Positions 11,941 to 55,570 of a stretch of 64,000 bases of DNA are shown here, piece after piece; within the stretch, counting starts at the first letter, position 1, and every line of letters starts with the position of its first letter. The position numbers and the translations under genes were made by a program. The stretch is from Dicyema japonicum (taxonomy: Eukaryota > Animalia > Dicyemida): the NCBI GenBank assembly GCA_011109175.1, contig RDEW01000005.1, positions 1,908,238 to 1,972,237 on the forward strand. The letters are read 5' to 3'. Below the pieces are notes generated by a model. The model had not been told where the DNA came from. It saw only the letters and a program-made list of their open reading frames with translations, and did not search any database.

Positions 11941-13207
11941 ATGTTGGAATTTCTTGTTTTTAGTGTGATGGGTTTTGTCTTTGCCCTCGTTTTTATCGGT
12001 ACTGGGGCGTTTGTTGGGATAATTATGGCGATTAGTTACTTTTCAGTAAGACTCTTCAGTGATTCTCTCCATAAGACTCTATGCTACATCCTCGCCGATA
12101 TATTTTGGTCAAGTATATACCACTTATGAGTTAAGTATTTCCTGTTTTCTGTCTTGGATGGGGAGGATTGGAGTTGTCGGTTTACGGTGATCCAAAAGTT
12201 CTATCAAAATGGAATGCTGGTCACAATATTGTTCTAGAAAACCATAACTACGAAATTGACTTCATTGTTGGTTACTGTGTCCTCTATCTGGCCAATATTA
12301 TTGGAGTCGTCTATACTGATCACTTTTAGAGTTCCAAGTTGGTCGGGAAAAAGATGCTTAGTATTGTTCCTATTCAGGGACCGGTTTGGTTCTTTACAGA
12401 CAGTCTCTTCATTAAACGAGTCTGGAAAGATGACGAGAAGATGATAAAGGATTATGTTCCACGGATTAGTAAATATCCAAAGTATCTTCCAATAACAGTA
12501 AAATTCAAATATAAAAACAGCTGCTATTCCACCCGGAAGGCACTCGCTTTACCGAAAAGAAGCACGTGGCTTGTGTAAATTACTACAAAGAGCTAGGACT
12601 TGAGCCTCTGCAATATTTACTGACTCCAAGGATGTGAGGATTTAAATCAATTGTCAATGCCCTGCGAAATAACTGTTAGTTTCTTATTTTTATTAAAGTT
12701 GACCATTTGGTCGATACGACCTTGTTGATTCGGCCAAAATACGATGGGTACCAAATCTCGGTCAAAAATCTGCTTCTTCGAAAAAAATTTGTAGCCGAGC
12801 TATATGTGAGTGTTTTGGTTTTACAATAGTGTAATGTCTATGATATGAAAGATGTCCCCACAGAAGATCAAGATCTGGGAGCCTTTTTGACAGATTCTTA
12901 CTACTTTAAGGACAAGTTGATGGATTTCTTTCACAAAAATGGAAGTATTGCTCAGAAATATGATCTTCTCGCTTCGTCGTCTTTCCCAAATGATTTACTA
13001 TATCGGTCTGTCTTGATTTTCTTTATATCATTCTGCTATTACAATGTCCTCATTTTATTTATCTCCCACATTACTGGTCTGAGTTGTTTTTCTATCGCGT
13101 GTGGAATATTTGGTGGATGTTTGTGATTTAGTATATATTTTAGTGTACATGCTCGCTTTTTCGGCAATTCAATTTCTAACCGTGACTTAATTTCGTTTAT
13201 TTATTAA
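11941..13207 (+). CDS. 1-acylglycerol-3-phosphate acyltransferase, AGPAT3/4 type (in-frame TGA at 12635-12637)
   Basis: Motifs NHNYEIDF, 'KKMLSIVPIQGPVWFF..FIKRVW', 'PEGTRFTEKKH' and 'LLTPRM*GF'; 19-24 nt introns. The 3' end is either 13126 or 13207. Confidence 0.88.
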
Positions 13208-17000: not shown

Positions 17001-18405
17001 ATGCTTTTTGTCCTATCGTTACTATGTCTTATTGAAGGCAAAGAACAGAAAGGTTTTATTAACCTCGATAATCAGTAAATCTATTAAATCATACTTTTAT
17101 AAAGAATTCCGGTCTTTAATATTAACTTGGATGAATCTCCGAAGGAAAGATGGAAGGAATTGCTTCTTGCGAAGAGAGAAGAAGTAACAGAAAGATTTGG
17201 CATTTAGATCCTGGCCCTCAAACGTTATTCCGATCATTTGATTTCATCTTTTCCATTTTTCGGGAGAAAAATATTAAAATTAATTCAAAATTCACAGGTA
17301 GTTGAAATACAATATTTGAGCCTCCTTTAGAGAGACTTCCGAATGATTACGGAGAGGAAATTTACTGGGGGAGTAAATATATTGGATCAACTCCAGGTAT
17401 AAATTGATGATAAATGAAGGATATTTATTCTTTCTTAATTCATTAATGGAATTGACGACATTTTGTACTTCACTGGTGGCTGAGGATTCCAACGGAGGTT
17501 ACCGTGAATTACCTTAATTATTAGAACAGTTCTTTGCTAGAAGCCTTGATTTTGGGATTCTAGGGTACTTTTAGTTAATAGTTTAAGATATAATATCAAA
17601 AAGCACTTGTTCCCTATGACTGATCTTATAAGGAACATCACCGTGGTCACACACTTTACAAGAAATGGAAAATATCTATACACGGCAGTTACTCCCGCTG
17701 GTTTTTTCGGGGTGGTCACTGGATTTAAACCAGTCTGACACGGAAATAATTTGTAGGGAAAATTTGCTTTGTCAATTAATCAACGAGTCGAGCCTCTGAA
17801 ACAGTTACCCGGAATTTTGGGTATCAACGTATAGTAGCTTTAGATTTTTACAAGTGGCTAAAACATAAATTCGATCAAAGAAAATTTAGTGTCTTTCTCC
17901 TAAGGGAAGTTTTGGATACTTGTGATACTTTCGACCAAGTTATAGAAATACTCAAAAATACAAAAGTCGTAGCCCCCTGTTACTTTATTGTCGGATCCGT
18001 CAATTCTTCGCAGTTCATTGGTTCACTAACTTTAGGGTGCTGTGGTTACGAAGAAAAGGAATAAGAGTGATGTTTGGATGATGAATGACACGACTAATAT
18101 TGGACGTCCCTGGTTTATTTTGCAGACCAACTACGATCACAATCTATCTCCCTTATTCTTTGACGACAGGAGATACAAAGGGTACGAATACATGCGAAAC
18201 TTGACTCCAAGTGTAATATGTTTGTTATATCAAGAATGTCGGGATTAATAATTTGATGGATTTGATGAGCATGAAACCTTTGAGGAATAAAGTATTCGTT
18301 ATTTCAACTTAGCTTACAATATATTCGTTTATCATGAATATTCGGAGTGGAGATATTCAAGGGAAATTTCAGTATTGCAAGGAGGATGACTGTCCTCTGT
18401 TTTAG
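17001..18405 (+). CDS. ASAH1: Acid ceramidase (Ntn hydrolase); one missing G near the intron at 18013-18035
   Basis: Signal peptide, 'IPVFNINLDESPKERW', catalytic 'FCTSLVAED', 'ARSLDFG', 'VAPCYFIVG' and 'WFILQTNYDH...DDRR'; introns of 21-30 nt. Confidence 0.9.
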
Positions 18406-34510: not shown

Positions 34511-34820
34511 TTATTCAATTAATCTGTTATTAATTCCATTTACCCTTTTCCAAAAACTGTTGTAATATGAGGACAAATTTTCGGATTCGAGACCACTCAT
34601 TACAAATCCGATATTTGTTAGCAATTCTCCTCTTACAGTTGCTCTTGGTCTAATTACATTTAGGCGAGATTTCACACAAGAAAAAAAGTTTTCAATTGGG
34701 TTTAGGTCAGGTGAATAAGGGGGTAAATAAACATTTGTAACACTTTTCCTAATAAAGAAGTCTTTAATTTCATCACAATGATGAAATCTATCATTATCCA
34801 TCACAACAACAGGAGAATTT
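34511..34820 (-). mobile_element. IS630/Tc1 DDE transposase C-terminal fragment
   Basis: 'VVVMDNDRFH...YLPPYSPDLNPIENFFS'. Confidence 0.9.
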
Positions 34821-35222
34821 NTTCTTTGATTAGAAACCAATTAATGTTGATTTAATGACAGGTGACATGTCGTAAATTCTTTGATTAGAAACGATAGGTG
34901 ACATAATACTATTGAAGTAGAGCTTAAAAGGTTCGTATTCGTAAAGATTATGGAGCGAATCCTTTTCTGCATCAATCCTAGTCTGTCGTATCGAGTGAAT
35001 GATCCAAAGGGTCACCAATGATCTACGTGAGACTAGATAGCTTCAAGAACATACCTCGCAAGCTATTGTCAGAGGAAACAGCCTGGCCATTCAAGCGCTT
35101 AATAACACTTATGCCATTCTAATTTTCAATAAATATTTCAAAATAATCAACCCCACAAAAACAGGGCAAATAAAATTAATAAAAATTAAAAATAAATAAT
35201 GACTACCAGTAATTTTAATAAT

Positions 35223-44200: not shown

Positions 44201-45771
44201 CCTTCTCTATTTCAGTTTCGCTGCTCCAAAACTTGAGTTTTCCAAACCAACTTGATTTACTTTGCTTATTTTTTAAATTCTAAACCATCACGAACAAACT
44301 AATACTTTTTTACGAGCAAGTTTTCTCGCGAGGACAAGGGAAAACAAATCCAATTTATCCTCGCACACCAAAAATAACAGAAACTTCTAACTTTAAGCTT
44401 TTCTTTCGTTTCTTTGGAGACTTTATTATAACCATGAGTCAATATTTTGTCATACAAGTCAATGTAGTCCCTGAGGACACGAAAATGTTGAAGAGTGGCA
44501 TATATGTCTTTATTTTTTAATTTTGGCCTTATCTGTGTCTCCAAAATGCACGTGTACGCATATTTCCATCTGATATTAGCTTGTAATAGTACAAAGTGCG
44601 ATAGTCGGACTTTAGATCTCCAAGAGGTCGATATTTACGGAACTGGGAGGAAATTTTGATGGCATTGAAAGAGTCCAATATTTGAAGAACTCCCACGTAC
44701 TCCTATAAAAGAGACAACTCACCTGGGAACGTTCCAAAATCAATTCAAAGTTTCCGAGTTGAATATGAGCGACGACTTTTGGCCGAGAATAATTCGTATC
44801 CATTGGTTTCATATCAATTTCGAGTTTGACGTCGAGTGAAAGTGGGGACAGCACTAAAATTAGTCAAAACAAACCATAATTCAGCTTCGATTTGTTCGCC
44901 TTTATATTTTTGAGCAAAAAATCCTAAAATCAGCAAAAATGGTAAAACTTGAATTTCGTTGCTGGATTTTCCGATAATCAAGGTTGGGTGGTTGACGACT
45001 ACGTAAAAAGTGAGGGAACGAATCGCAGCCAGCTAAATAAATTAAAGACACATTAACTTTGTTAAAAATGAACGAAGTCTCAGTGATGACTGTTTCCATC
45101 CAGTCTTTGTCGACTGTCTACCAAATTTATAAGAGAATACCCTTATAAAGATTTCCTTCAGAGTTAATCCGATTGCTATTGGCTTTGATGAATTAGTATA
45201 ATCCTCATATCGGATATGAACATTCTTGACAGTCAATTGTAAATTTTTTAGAATTTGAAATAAAATCATTTCGATATATCCGATAGGCTGGTTAACTTCT
45301 TCCTTCGCTTCATTGATGCTCTCGATACTGGCGAGGCGAGACATCTTTCTGTTATAAGCAATCTTGTTGTCTTCCTCTGGATCATACGGCATCACTCTGT
45401 AAGATAAAACCGATACCATTTATTGGCTGACAACAAATCAGAAGATTCTCCATTACCCCAACAACTGGAGCCTTGTAGATGTTAGTCCACGGGACCTTCA
45501 GTTTGAGGGTTCCTGGATTATTAGATTCCTAGAAACCGATCTTCCCGAAGGTCACGGAAATTGGAATATTTTTGTCTTCCTGAAAATATTAAATTAATAA
45601 TACAAAAATAGTCGACTTCAAAATTAGGTCATTAAGGCTAATATCACCTAAAATTTTATATTTTCATTAACCATTCCAAATGTTTGTCTTAAGCTGATCT
45701 TTATCCAAGTTAACTATGTAATCTCCAAGTGCACGATTTATTAGATCTGCGACCAAACTTTCAAACACCAT
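35223..45771 (-). CDS. VPS13: Vacuolar protein sorting 13 (VPS13A/C-type bridge lipid-transfer protein)
   Basis: Chorein N-terminus '[34 protein letters not shown]', '[10 protein letters not shown]', 'WEPLIEP', 'CPYWVVNKT' and APT1/ATG2C '[11 protein letters not shown]'. The frame was followed through more than 40 tiny introns; two need TG acceptors; two internal duplications. Confidence 0.95.
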
Positions 45772-51020: not shown

Positions 51021-51425
51021 GACAAGTCTGGTAGGCATCCAAAGGGAGCGTAAAATCTTTAGGACAAGATCTGGTAAGGATTATGCATATAATTTAATCG
51101 TGATGTTTCCAGTGTTTTTACGGTACTGAAATTCCAAGGAATTCAACGGGGGATAGGAAATTTAGATAACTATGGGTAAAGATTTTCTCCCACCTGACAG
51201 CCGATCACTCCTGATGGTGGTTGGCCCATCGTAAGAAAAACGTACGAAAAGCGGTCTGGCTGAGGAAACGAATTGGAATTGCAGTTGTCCGCGGAAACGC
51301 TTACTCCGTAATGTCAGCAGCCGCTCTTCCCTGTTATTGGTAATAAATAATATTTTAATTTACTAATAAATGTTAGCAAAAAATTTTATAATAAAAAAAT
51401 ATTTAAATTTAAATAAATCTTGTGT

Positions 51426-54186
51426 ATGATGGCAGATTTACTAGAATTTGAAAAAGAAATGTTCTTGGATTTTTATGATAACAACATTTTGCTCGTCACA
51501 GCTCGGTAACCTTTAAATATTGATTTGCAGTGGATTAGACGTGGACAACATATTGCTTCATTTCCTAATGGCGTACGCTGACCCTGGGATTTTAATATTT
51601 ATTTTGAATTTAAATAAAGATTGTGAAGTAAATTAAATATTATTTCAGAAATATTTGTTAGATAAACTGACTGATGCTCCATGCCTCATAAAATCCATCC
51701 ACAGTCAGTATAGTGCCTCTGAAAGGTAGTCGTAAGGTTTAAGCAGAACAAATTTTTATCTCAACGGAGGCATTTTTTTCATAACTGCGAGAATACTGAT
51801 TGTTGATTTGTTGTGCAGTCGGGTCCCAACTGAGCATATCACTGGGATTGTTGTGCACAAAGCTCACAAGTATAGTTGCAATTCAAATCTTAGAATTACG
51901 TGGAGTATTCAGGAGGCTTTTATCTGCAGGCTCTATAGGGAGACGAATTCGGTTGCTGTGTGTTGAATATTCACAGAAAGGATTCATCAAGGCTTTATCG
52001 TCATCTCCTGATTCTTTCGTACGGCGATTCGGAAACCTAGAAAAATCCGTTAAAAATTTATTTGCCGCCAAAATATCCATCTGGCCGCGTTTTCATTCTC
52101 ATGTTATTTCATGCATGGAAAAGAAAATTGTATTCGACATTCCTTAGTTGAAGCCCAAAATAAAGGAAATCGAGCTACGAATGACCCCCTCAATGCGGCA
52201 GTGTCATTCCGCACTTTTTGATTTAATCAATGCCTGTCTTAAGGAGCTGAAATCCACTTTTCCTAACAAACAGGTGTCATGTTGGTAAATTTTATAGGAC
52301 ACGTTGTTTTCACTCGAAATTGAAGACTTGGCGGTCCCTAGCTTTGAGAACCTCCTCAATTACCTACTAGATTCGCTGTCTCCCAATTTGAGCGAACGAA
52401 CAAGGCTGATTATTTTAAATCTAAGAGATTTTTTGATTCTTCTAAGGTTTGCTGAAATTTAACTTCAGTAAACTTTTAAATTCAGATTCATTGACCTTCT
52501 TGAGGATGACTGAGGATTTGAGGTTTTAGTTTGCTCCCATCATTAATAGGAAGTCCTCCATGGATAGCTCGTTTGGATGGGTTACCTCAGATCCGGCTGA
52601 TTTGCTCTTTAGAGTAATTTTGCATTTTTATTTAACTGTCCGCTAATTCCAGGATCAAGGATGAAGGGCACGTGGAATCAAACAGTCGTTGGGATTTGTT
52701 TTTTTCAATTTTACTGGAAATTATTTCTGAAAATACTGACAAATCATTAAATATTCTGGTAATCACTTCGTCCCGCAATAACAGAGATGCCTTGTCCCAT
52801 GTGACTACTTTGTATGATTTCATAGATCCTGAGTGATGGAGTGGTCTCATATTTGAACAGCCTTAATCTCATATTATTCGGCAAACCGGCTAATTATGAT
52901 TATCCGACATCCGAGGTGGATTCATTTGGCTTTTTGTAGAACTTTGATGAACTGAGGGGATGTTGTAGGGAACCCTGTACAATAAACGACGATGATGAAT
53001 GGACTTCTGTCCTTCAGGCTGTTGAAGAGTGCAAGTTATCCACGCCGAGGGGGAAGATTTACATTCAAAATGTGCAATCTAATACTGGGTATTCACGTGC
53101 TTTACACGACATTCTTAATTCTGTTCAGCCAAGTCATATAATCCTATATGAACCGAAATATCCCGTTGTACGGCAACTGGAAGTTTGTGGGTTCTTTATT
53201 TTTGGTTTATCAATGCCGACTGGAATATCCTCTTTCTGTGTATTTTATGATGTATGTCAACAGTTTCGAAGAACAGATTTACTTGACTGGGCTAGCTAAG
53301 GAAAGAGATGCATTCGAACAGTTGGCCGTGTTGATGTCGTCGACAGTTCCTGTTGAACAGTTTACAATTCGTACTGAGATGGCTGATGATGAAAGAAAAG
53401 GGGGAGTGAGCAACGAGTCTGCTGTTTGTTGATTATATTAAATCAGATTTTTGTCGACATGAGGGAATTTAGATCTGATCTCCCATATAATCTGTACATG
53501 GCTGGATTTCGGATTTTGCCAGTTACTCTGGAGGTTTATTTCACTGTATAGTTAGATTGGGGATTACCTGCTCAGTCCAGAGTTGTGTATTGAACGGAAG
53601 AATGTGGCCGATCTTATTTCGTCCCTCAACTCTGGAAGATTGTACACTCAATGTGTGGGCATGTGTTCGGTTTACTCCCATCCTTTGATTCTCGTTGAGT
53701 TTGATTTGGACCGCTCGTTTACTCTGCAGGTAATAACGGATTAAGTATTTCATAGTCAAAATCACAGTTTACGACAGAGATTGTCCAGCAGGATTTGAGC
53801 TCAAAGTTGGGACTCCTCTCCATTACCTTTCCGCGATTGCGGTTTTTGTGGTGCTCCAATCCACAAGCGGGGGCGTCTTTGTTGGCACAACTAAAAGTAT
53901 GGTTCGGCAATTTTTGTAGAAACACAGAACTGGGTTTAGTGAAGAGGAAATTAGCCGAAACAAGGTGATTCAAGAGTCGGATGATCAGTTTTCAATAATT
54001 CAACGAGAATTGCTTTTGAAAGTGAAGGGGGTGACTCAGGCGAATGCGGATTTACTGACTAATGGGTTCACTTCATTGGCTGACATTTTCTGTTCTTCCT
54101 CTGAAATTCTTGGAAAGGTTTTAACTGATAATAAACTTGGGTGTGATATTTTTGATTTTTGTCATTTTAGTAATAAAACGTGTTAA
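51426..54186 (+). CDS. ERCC4: DNA repair endonuclease XPF
   Basis: 'LLEFEKEM...VTARGL', 'IWPRFH', 'RQLE|VYQ...VYFMMY..SFEEQIYL', and an intact nuclease motif 'FVDMREFRS..P...VTLEIGDY.LSPELCIERKNVADLISSLNSGRL'; about 17 introns of 21-27 nt, one GT-AA and one GT-TG. Confidence 0.95.
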
Positions 54187-54546
54187 TATAACATACTTTT
54201 TATTTTATTAGATTTTTTATGGATAGACAGTGTAATGAGTGCCGAGCAAAAGGCATGACCCCTAGCTAGAATATCGCTGCTGTATAATCCGGCTGAAGAT
54301 TCCACGCATCTACGATGCTTTGGCTTGGTGAATGATTCCGTCATCAGTGAACATTCCACTGCGGAAATGGATCGTATATAAACGAATCATATTAAAAAAG
54401 TGAGGACGTGTAGTGAAAATGGAAAAGGGCAAAAATGCCTTTCCATATCTTTTCTGAATCGGAAGCCTTTGTACTATTGGAGATGGATTTGGTCGGCACA
54501 AGCAGATATTCTCTGTTGGGATTCTTCCTTGGATTAATTAGTTATG

Positions 54547-54875
54547 ACTAGGGCGATTTTTTGACTATAATTTTAACCTAAAAATTGACTTTATTGACTT
54601 TAAATTTAAAAATTTTTACCATTTTAACTTATGACAAATTCATCTATAAAATTTTTTGTAATATGAAAAAAAAATAATTAAAAAATTTATTAATATATAT
54701 TAAAATATAGAATAATGTAATTCAAAACGTTTTCAGGTTAAAAATTTGTCTTTAGATAATAATTTTATCAATAATAAAAATCTTTTCAGAATAGATAAAG
54801 ATGTGGAAGGATATTTTTCAAATAGCCGTATATGCATTAGAAATATTTTGTTTTTCCATTTTTGTAATAGAAACA
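54547..54875 (+). repeat. Uninterrupted copy of the AT-rich dispersed repeat that is split at 29161/32080
   Basis: The left part matches 29161-29255 and the right part (aaaatatagaataatgtaatt...ttttccatttttgtaatagaaa) matches 32080-32235. Confidence 0.8.
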
Positions 54876-54889
54876 AATAACTTTTAACT

Positions 54890-55570
54890 AATTATTATTA
54901 CCTCCAGGATCACTGGGTCAAAGAAAAGAAATAAAAGGCTCTCAACTAACTAAGTGATCCCAGACCGACAAGGGAGAGGACGGGTCCGGTAGGGTAGAGA
55001 ATCCTGAACAGCTCTTCTCATTGAACATGCCATCGGCTCAAAATTTCTGTGTGATTGTAGATATTACGATATTGTATGGAATAGAGAGCAGCTTGGTAAA
55101 CTAGCCTTCTTTAAGAGTTTCCGTTGTAATTCTATTAAGAGATTTTCAATGGGCTGTTTTTTGTGTTCTGGTCCAATTATCTTCATTGCGGTCTCCTCGA
55201 TTGCAGATAGTTTCAATGAGGAGGATCGTGAAATCTGCATTGCCCACAAAGGACTTGCACATGTCCGCTTGTGGGCTAATAATTCCTGATTTTTAACAGC
55301 AAATGGGACAAATAAATGATCCTCAGAAATTTTTTGGTACTTCCTTCTCTAATGATGCTCGGTTTGCTTAGAAAACCTTTTTGAAAAGGGGCATCAGTAT
55401 CTTGTCCTGGCCGGGCGCGTTGTTCCGTGACTTCCTGATAACAGCTAGGACCTCTATTGTCTGGATATCAGCGCTCAAGCCTCATAGAAAGCTGTTCAGT
55501 CTGTCGTTTTCAAAGGTGATAACATCCTGCACGCACAGACAGCCAGAATTATCGAGATTGAACTGAAACC
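54890..55570 (-). mobile_element. LINE post-RT/3' end fragment
   Basis: The 3' end is homologous to 20570-20740 (ggatcactgggtcaa...aagtgatcccagaccgac). Confidence 0.6.

Follow-up and report, generated by a model that had tools for sequence, protein, structure and literature searches.

A 22-nt intron-like stretch without a usable AG interrupts the XPF/ERCC4 gene of Dicyema japonicum, and our analysis supports the view that this stretch must leave the message if XPF is to retain its R-x-L-E motif and its reading frame. The stretch (gtttgtgggttctttatttttg, GT..TG) occupies positions 53183-53204 on the forward strand of the window, by which we mean the whole 64,000-nt piece of contig RDEW01000005.1 that was analysed. 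We assessed it by its sequence, its XPF profile join, its composition and its occurrence in DNA contigs. Of the two ends that define a U2-type intron, the 5' GT is present and the terminal 3' AG is absent. It is probably an ordinary micro-intron whose 3' AG reads TG and which would still be removed from XPF pre-mRNA by the major spliceosome. A preliminary description, made from the letters, had noticed the same intron; as far as sequence and homology can tell, its observation is confirmed, and its interpretation, that GT-TG micro-introns are spliced constitutively, appears partly supported.

The XPF gene and its surroundings

The window has a G+C content of about 36%, a high repeat content, introns of 19-28 nt and a haplotype divergence of about 1%. 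The published genome of Dicyema japonicum has 36.7% G+C, 1.24% heterozygosity and 49% repeats (PMC6736024). The genes in the window are ordinary animal genes interrupted by very short introns; besides XPF, which lies at 51426-54186 on the forward strand, they include VPS13 (about 45771-35588, reverse strand) and a TGF-beta type I receptor (about 59.1-60.7 kb). A search of the window against Rfam gave no match.

We collected XPF homologues with the nuclease exon, built a profile HMM from the 33 full-length ones and mapped all stop-free pieces of the region to this profile. The gene model used here has 17 introns and encodes 789 aa. The full model scored 655 bits over profile positions 3-865 of 871, was collinear with XPF over its full length and kept the GDY..ERK..D nuclease motif, which bears out the earlier claim that the gene is otherwise intact. 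The nuclease exon (53556-53741) encodes GDY..ERKNVAD and matched XPF proteins up to 1e-20 in an exhaustive protein-database search; among the XPF homologues found in that search none was near-identical, the best having 63% identity. A word-index search of protein databases with the open reading frame of the exon downstream of the stretch returned zero candidates, and the upstream exon alone had no match in the PDB.

XPF is flanked by very high-copy sequences at 51179-51375 and 54134-55315. Their word depth in run X1 was about 327,000 and up to about 606,000, compared with 371 for XPF, and the first of them stops at about 51331, just 5' of the XPF start codon.

The junction at 53183-53204

When the sequence and the coordinates were rechecked on the letters, both agreed with the preliminary description. 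The stretch separates the XPF residues ...RQLE and VYQ.... The upstream exon (52940-53182, forward strand, end ...YEPKYPVVRQLE) covers profile positions 508-557 up to its ending ...PSHIILYEPKYPVVRQLE, and the downstream exon (53205-53423, forward strand, start VYQCRLEYPLSVYF...) covers positions 558-617, matching residues 599-652 of human XPF in PDB 6sxa; zero residues are lost or added at the join. The RQLE|VYQ junction that had been predicted upon removal was thus reproduced exactly by the 33-homologue profile, and without the 22 nt we obtained a single unbroken local alignment of 83.2 bits. Reading through the stretch gave 22.0 bits and a stop at 53297. The Arg and Glu of the motif R-x-[VIL]-E, invariant in 33 of 33 homologues, were retained only in the model with the 22 nt removed, in which ...CAACTGGAA would be joined to GTTTATCAATG....

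The only AG near the stretch, at 53182-53183, spans the donor junction, with one base in the exon and one in the intron. There is no AG from 53184 to 53261; the closest one downstream, at 53262, is 58 nt off and lies within conserved coding sequence, and the claim that no usable AG is available therefore stands. GT-AG introns with the donor of the stretch would span 81 nt, which is the wrong frame, or 94 nt, which drops the conserved YF..Y.S.EEQ.YL block and scored 28.3 bits.

GTTT is present at both ends of the 22 nt, giving five registers, from 53183-53204 (GT..TG) to 53187-53208 (GT..TT), with identical mRNA. According to the register, the 3' end of the stretch reads TG, GG, GT or TT, and a 5' GT is found at 53183 and also at 53187. 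Register ambiguity of 3-5 nt occurs in 9 of 71 canonical introns as well. Since all five registers lead to the same mRNA, even RNA-seq cannot show TG as the intron end. The earlier designation as a GT...TG intron is accordingly right in naming TG as an allowed end and too narrow in naming it alone, TG being one of several ends among equivalent registers.

DNA sequence and haplotype differences

We found one Logan contig, from runs X1-X3 (word depth 371 in X1), that is collinear with 51310-53975 over about 2.7 kb, with 25 substitutions and 0 gaps. Across 53183-53204 it showed zero differences from the window, and position 53203, a possible error in the eyes of the preliminary description, was T and not A. 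Its divergence from the window, about 1% of positions, makes the contig a second haplotype, not a copy of the assembly. Because an independent haplotype diverged by about 1% carries the same letters, we exclude both a T-for-A error at 53203 and an indel in a homopolymer. All sequencing runs carrying the locus were DNA, and the contigs of these runs were collinear with the genome, with no joints at any intron.

Placed on the XPF model, the 25 haplotype differences comprised 13 synonymous, 9 non-synonymous, 2 intronic and 1 upstream. We compared them with a synonymous expectation obtained by placing the same mutation types at random sites. Over the whole gene, 13 of only 22 differences were synonymous where 7.0 were expected (P = 0.006). 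In the part downstream of the stretch (53205-53975, three exons), where the frame is restored by the removal only, 6 of just 8 differences were synonymous against 2.6 expected (P = 0.015). These small samples serve as supporting evidence that the frame downstream of 53183-53204 is probably in use and under purifying selection. Moreover, TG is common to both haplotypes, and their differences therefore arose with TG in place, which argues that XPF works with TG.

Likeness to canonical micro-introns

As a canonical reference we used 58 GT-AG introns from VPS13 and XPF in the window. These introns are 19-28 nt long, lengths of 22-24 nt being commonest, and their interior is 47% T and 28% A. They are built of GT followed by A or T, then a T-rich run and YAG at the 3' end, and in 36 of the 58 the A closest upstream of the AG sits at -6 to -8; the donor GTTTGT and the end ATTTTAG are each found three times. 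The stretch at 53183-53204 fits this build in length, in composition, in its donor GTTTGT and in its 3' heptamer (ATTTTTG vs ATTTTAG), and only base -2 deviates. Its composition was at the 79th percentile of the canonical introns and above the 99th percentile of exonic GT 22-mers, and its position-specific intron score, with the last two bases ignored, exceeded that of 42 of the 58. The sole A of its 3' half, at -7 from the end (53198), is followed by T5; this spacing matches that of the canonical local introns and makes the two a candidate branch point and pyrimidine tract. The next XPF intron, at 53424-53446, also begins with GTTTGT.

These features suggest how the intron could be removed. 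With GU at its 5' end, it would be handled by the major spliceosome, for which the A at -7 would act as branch point and the U5 run as a pyrimidine tract of minimal size. In the second step the cut would come some six bases beyond the branch A, behind the G(-1) that has been kept, and the 22-nt geometry may leave so little choice of site that an A at -2 becomes dispensable.

Alternative explanations

The cell might instead use a canonical 19-nt GT-AG intron at 53165-53183 (gttgtacggcaactggaag, forward strand), in which case the 22 nt would be coding and the protein would read ...EPKYP-FVGSLFL-VYQ.... This pair, overlooked in the preliminary description, has both GT and AG, restores the frame and was picked by a forced GT-AG-only parse, and the initial GT-AG-only parses, from which the canonical set was drawn, contained two 19-nt introns, though both were redrawn as 25 nt in later parses. 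Its use is nevertheless quite improbable, and we judged the 19 nt to be exon: removing them gave 65.4 bits against 83.2, a loss of 18 bits, required a 1-residue insertion and deleted the Arg and Glu that are invariant in 33 of 33 homologues. The composition and position-specific scores of the pair were below those of all 58 canonical introns (position-specific score -12.9 vs a mean of 2.5, sd 3.5), and it carries A at -3, found in 2 of the 58. Such a splice would join ...AAATATCCC to TTTGTGGGTTC (53164 to 53184) and is incompatible with GTTGTACGGCAACTGGAA in the message. The necessity of removing the 22 nt, asserted earlier with no regard to this pair, thus holds by homology and composition. 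It is somewhat less improbable, though still unlikely, that the AG was lost and the intron is now un- or poorly spliced, leaving this XPF copy null or decaying or most of its messages destroyed. Loss of the AG normally abolishes use of a 3' site, a further XPF intron (52614) is also without a good canonical solution, many genes have been lost in this lineage (PMC6736024), and other defects are present in the window, namely an AGPAT-like gene with an in-frame TGA and an acid-ceramidase-like gene with a 1-nt-off junction. However, the 789-aa reading of XPF is intact apart from this stretch, two haplotypes about 1% apart both have the TG and show downstream differences biased to synonymous, and the same build appears again in VPS13.

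Both frames are open across the 22 nt, and a ribosome shifting +1 inside a retained stretch would produce a 7-residue insertion; we consider this highly improbable, as no slippery, stop-stimulated or rare-codon pause site was found, the homologues and the profile have no insertion at this point of XPF, and the VPS13 stretch at 39953-39932 is closed by stops in both frames, which a single shift cannot bridge. Equally remote is an IES-like excision of the 22 nt from the DNA of somatic cells via the GTTT direct repeat. A 4-nt direct repeat does flank the stretch, and dicyemids are reported to eliminate DNA and to form circular DNA, but no joined form occurred in the DNA contigs, repeats of 3-5 nt are found at 9 of 71 canonical introns, and the VPS13 case has no repeat. 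An assembly or consensus error, either T for A at 53203 or an indel, is barely credible: 53203 does follow a T run, and a further junction in the window is off by 1 nt, yet an independently assembled contig from three runs has the same letters with 0 gaps over 2.7 kb, and a 1-nt change would not remove 22 nt.

Further candidates in VPS13 and XPF

The micro-intron ending in TG that we favour for XPF has a counterpart in VPS13. A 22-nt stretch at 39953-39932 on the reverse strand (gtaattttttaactgatttttg, GT..TG) is identical to the XPF stretch in length and in its last seven bases, ATTTTTG. It has no register ambiguity, and within it the upstream frame ends in TAA and the downstream frame in TGA. 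No AG follows for 86 nt, and the sole GT-AG option, of 88 nt, would delete 20 aligned VPS13_M residues and leave a remainder that scores nothing. The Pfam VPS13_M match of the downstream piece begins two residues past the proposed 39932 acceptor, and 11.4 of its 12.8 bits come from a 25-residue stretch (5-29) that contains the 20 deleted residues. At the protein level, removal of 25 nt, ending in TA, or of 28 nt, ending in TC, would also be possible. By frame and homology, VPS13 39953-39932 appears to be a solid second non-AG case in the window.

A 23-nt stretch at 44391-44369 on the reverse strand of VPS13 (gttagaagtttctgttatttttg) is ambiguous as a non-AG intron. The Pfam VPS13_N alignment halts exactly at the Lys before the 44391 donor, and the frame after the stretch scores better. 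However, a canonical 32-nt GT-AG intron with the same donor and an AG 9 nt further, ending at 44360, costs just three residues and 2.4 bits. The 32-aa piece after 44369 had no match in Pfam or the PDB. Two VPS13 introns ending in ATTTTTG had been named in the preliminary description; both exist, and the one at 44391-44369 has a canonical way out.

XPF itself contains another candidate, a 22-nt GT..AA stretch at 52614-52635 on the forward strand. This intron is favoured, by 9 bits and by intron likeness, and is not required, as a canonical 46-nt intron ending at 52659 also gives the frame. Within 52614-52659 on the same strand, the best branch-like box, CTAAT, belongs to a 39-nt GT-AG pair whose AG is at 52651-52652 and whose removal gives the wrong frame; the frame needs 22, 40 or 46 nt.

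In all three ATTTTTG stretches, one in XPF and two in VPS13, the last A is at -7. By a rough estimate, two independently forced junctions would share a 7-mer end, given the allowed registers, in about 1% of cases by chance. RNA structure around the three stretches was no different from that of shuffles. From these three sequences we infer that the 3' site may be set by length and U-tract, as had been proposed. In a wider form of this idea, Dicyema would constitutively splice a few percent of its micro-introns (3-4 of about 75 in the window) without a 3' AG; most of them would be GT..TG introns of 22-23 nt ending in A-U5-G. The terminal G and a spacing of about 6 nt from the branch adenosine, not AG recognition, would determine the second-step site, and published gene models of this genome limited to GT-AG would be systematically broken at such introns. 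We consider the chances of this general statement about even.

The de novo codon/intron parser was too weak to decide on junctions, having mis-split a conserved XPF exon, and it served only to list candidates and alternatives. When forced to GT-AG introns it always found a path, but via implausible introns of 88, 34 and 19 nt. The non-AG introns that it proposed at 12634, 60836, 16727, 627 and 23820 were rejected on inspection.

Relation to known splicing systems

Micro-introns of about 20-30 nt have been described in dicyemids and also in myxobolids (PMC2222250, PMC6543705, PMC6736024, PMC13644364). The XPF stretch resembles those of dicyemids in being 22 nt long and T/A-rich, in carrying A or T after its GT and an A shortly before its 3' end, and in lying inside a conserved animal gene. 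The published dicyemid logos and models, however, are of GT-AG introns, whereas the XPF stretch has no AG. Our full-text literature searches found no report of non-AG introns in dicyemids; as far as that literature shows, the micro-introns are already published and non-AG ones would be new.

Major-spliceosome introns with unusual ends are known elsewhere among animals. Appendicularians (Oikopleura, Fritillaria) have abundant non-canonical U2-type introns, and in them, as in Dicyema, a compact animal genome goes together with a major spliceosome that seems tolerant of non-consensus termini at many introns. In appendicularians chiefly the 5' end or both ends are affected (e.g. AG-AC), whereas the XPF stretch keeps its 5' GT and deviates only in the 3' dinucleotide. 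In humans, TG 3' sites reportedly form a tandem with an AG close by, and the TG form is usually the minor one. The XPF stretch differs in having no tandem AG within 58 nt downstream, and TG would here be the productive, constitutive site. TG is described as an alternative 3' splice site of human U2-type introns in 36 genes (PMC2374985), and the human acceptor and the XPF stretch both have TG in place of AG and keep the terminal G. The 3' end need not be AG in U12-type introns either, but the XPF stretch has neither an ATATCC/GTATCC donor box nor a TCCTTAAC branch box, and its 22 nt are far below U12 sizes.

The 3' AG is among the most rigid rules of U2-type splicing. If our reading is true, these introns would offer a natural animal test of how the catalytic spliceosome chooses a 3' site at a branch-to-3' distance of about 6 nt. 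Software for gene finding or read mapping that accepts only GT-AG, GC-AG and AT-AC would cut short or mis-frame genes like XPF and VPS13 in dicyemids, and such mis-framed genes would inflate the apparent gene loss in a lineage that is studied for genome reduction.

Other features of the window

Two further genes in the window have defects in their frames. An AGPAT/LCLAT-like gene at about 11941-13190 on the forward strand contains an in-frame TGA at 12635-12637 within the conserved sequence ...LLTPRM*GFKSIVNALRNN..., and the homology runs through it. This TGA could be a nonsense allele, an error or recoding; the 24-nt 'intron' that the parser placed there was wrong. An acid-ceramidase/NAAA-like gene at 17001-18405 on the forward strand has a junction, ...GSVNSSQ|GAVVTKKRNKS at 18013-18035, that maps to acid ceramidase structures. 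The upstream piece extends to residue 277 of 5u84_A (the same range in 5u81_A) with two residues left, and the downstream piece starts from 280 of 5u81_A, placing the join at 279|280. This junction needs 22 nt out (GT..TA or TT..AG). The GT-AG pair with an ACTAAC box spans 23 nt, 1 nt off, and with a canonical 37-nt intron instead VNSSQ would be lost. The mismatch points either to a G dropped from the GGG run at 18035-18037 or to a non-canonical splice. These defects are left unexplained by splicing, and not every frame break in the window need be a non-canonical intron.

VPS13 contains two tandem duplications on the reverse strand, at 39677-39404 and 44030-43539. In one, a 137-nt unit made up of an intron and part of an exon is duplicated and the frame is broken; in the other, about 30 residues occur twice. 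They could be haplotype-collapse artefacts or real. Just past the 3' end of VPS13, at 34514-34840 on the reverse strand, we found a fragment of a Tc1/mariner-type transposase (DDE region) that contains N; scattered fragments of reverse transcriptase occur at 15-16 kb, 20-22 kb and 55-58 kb.
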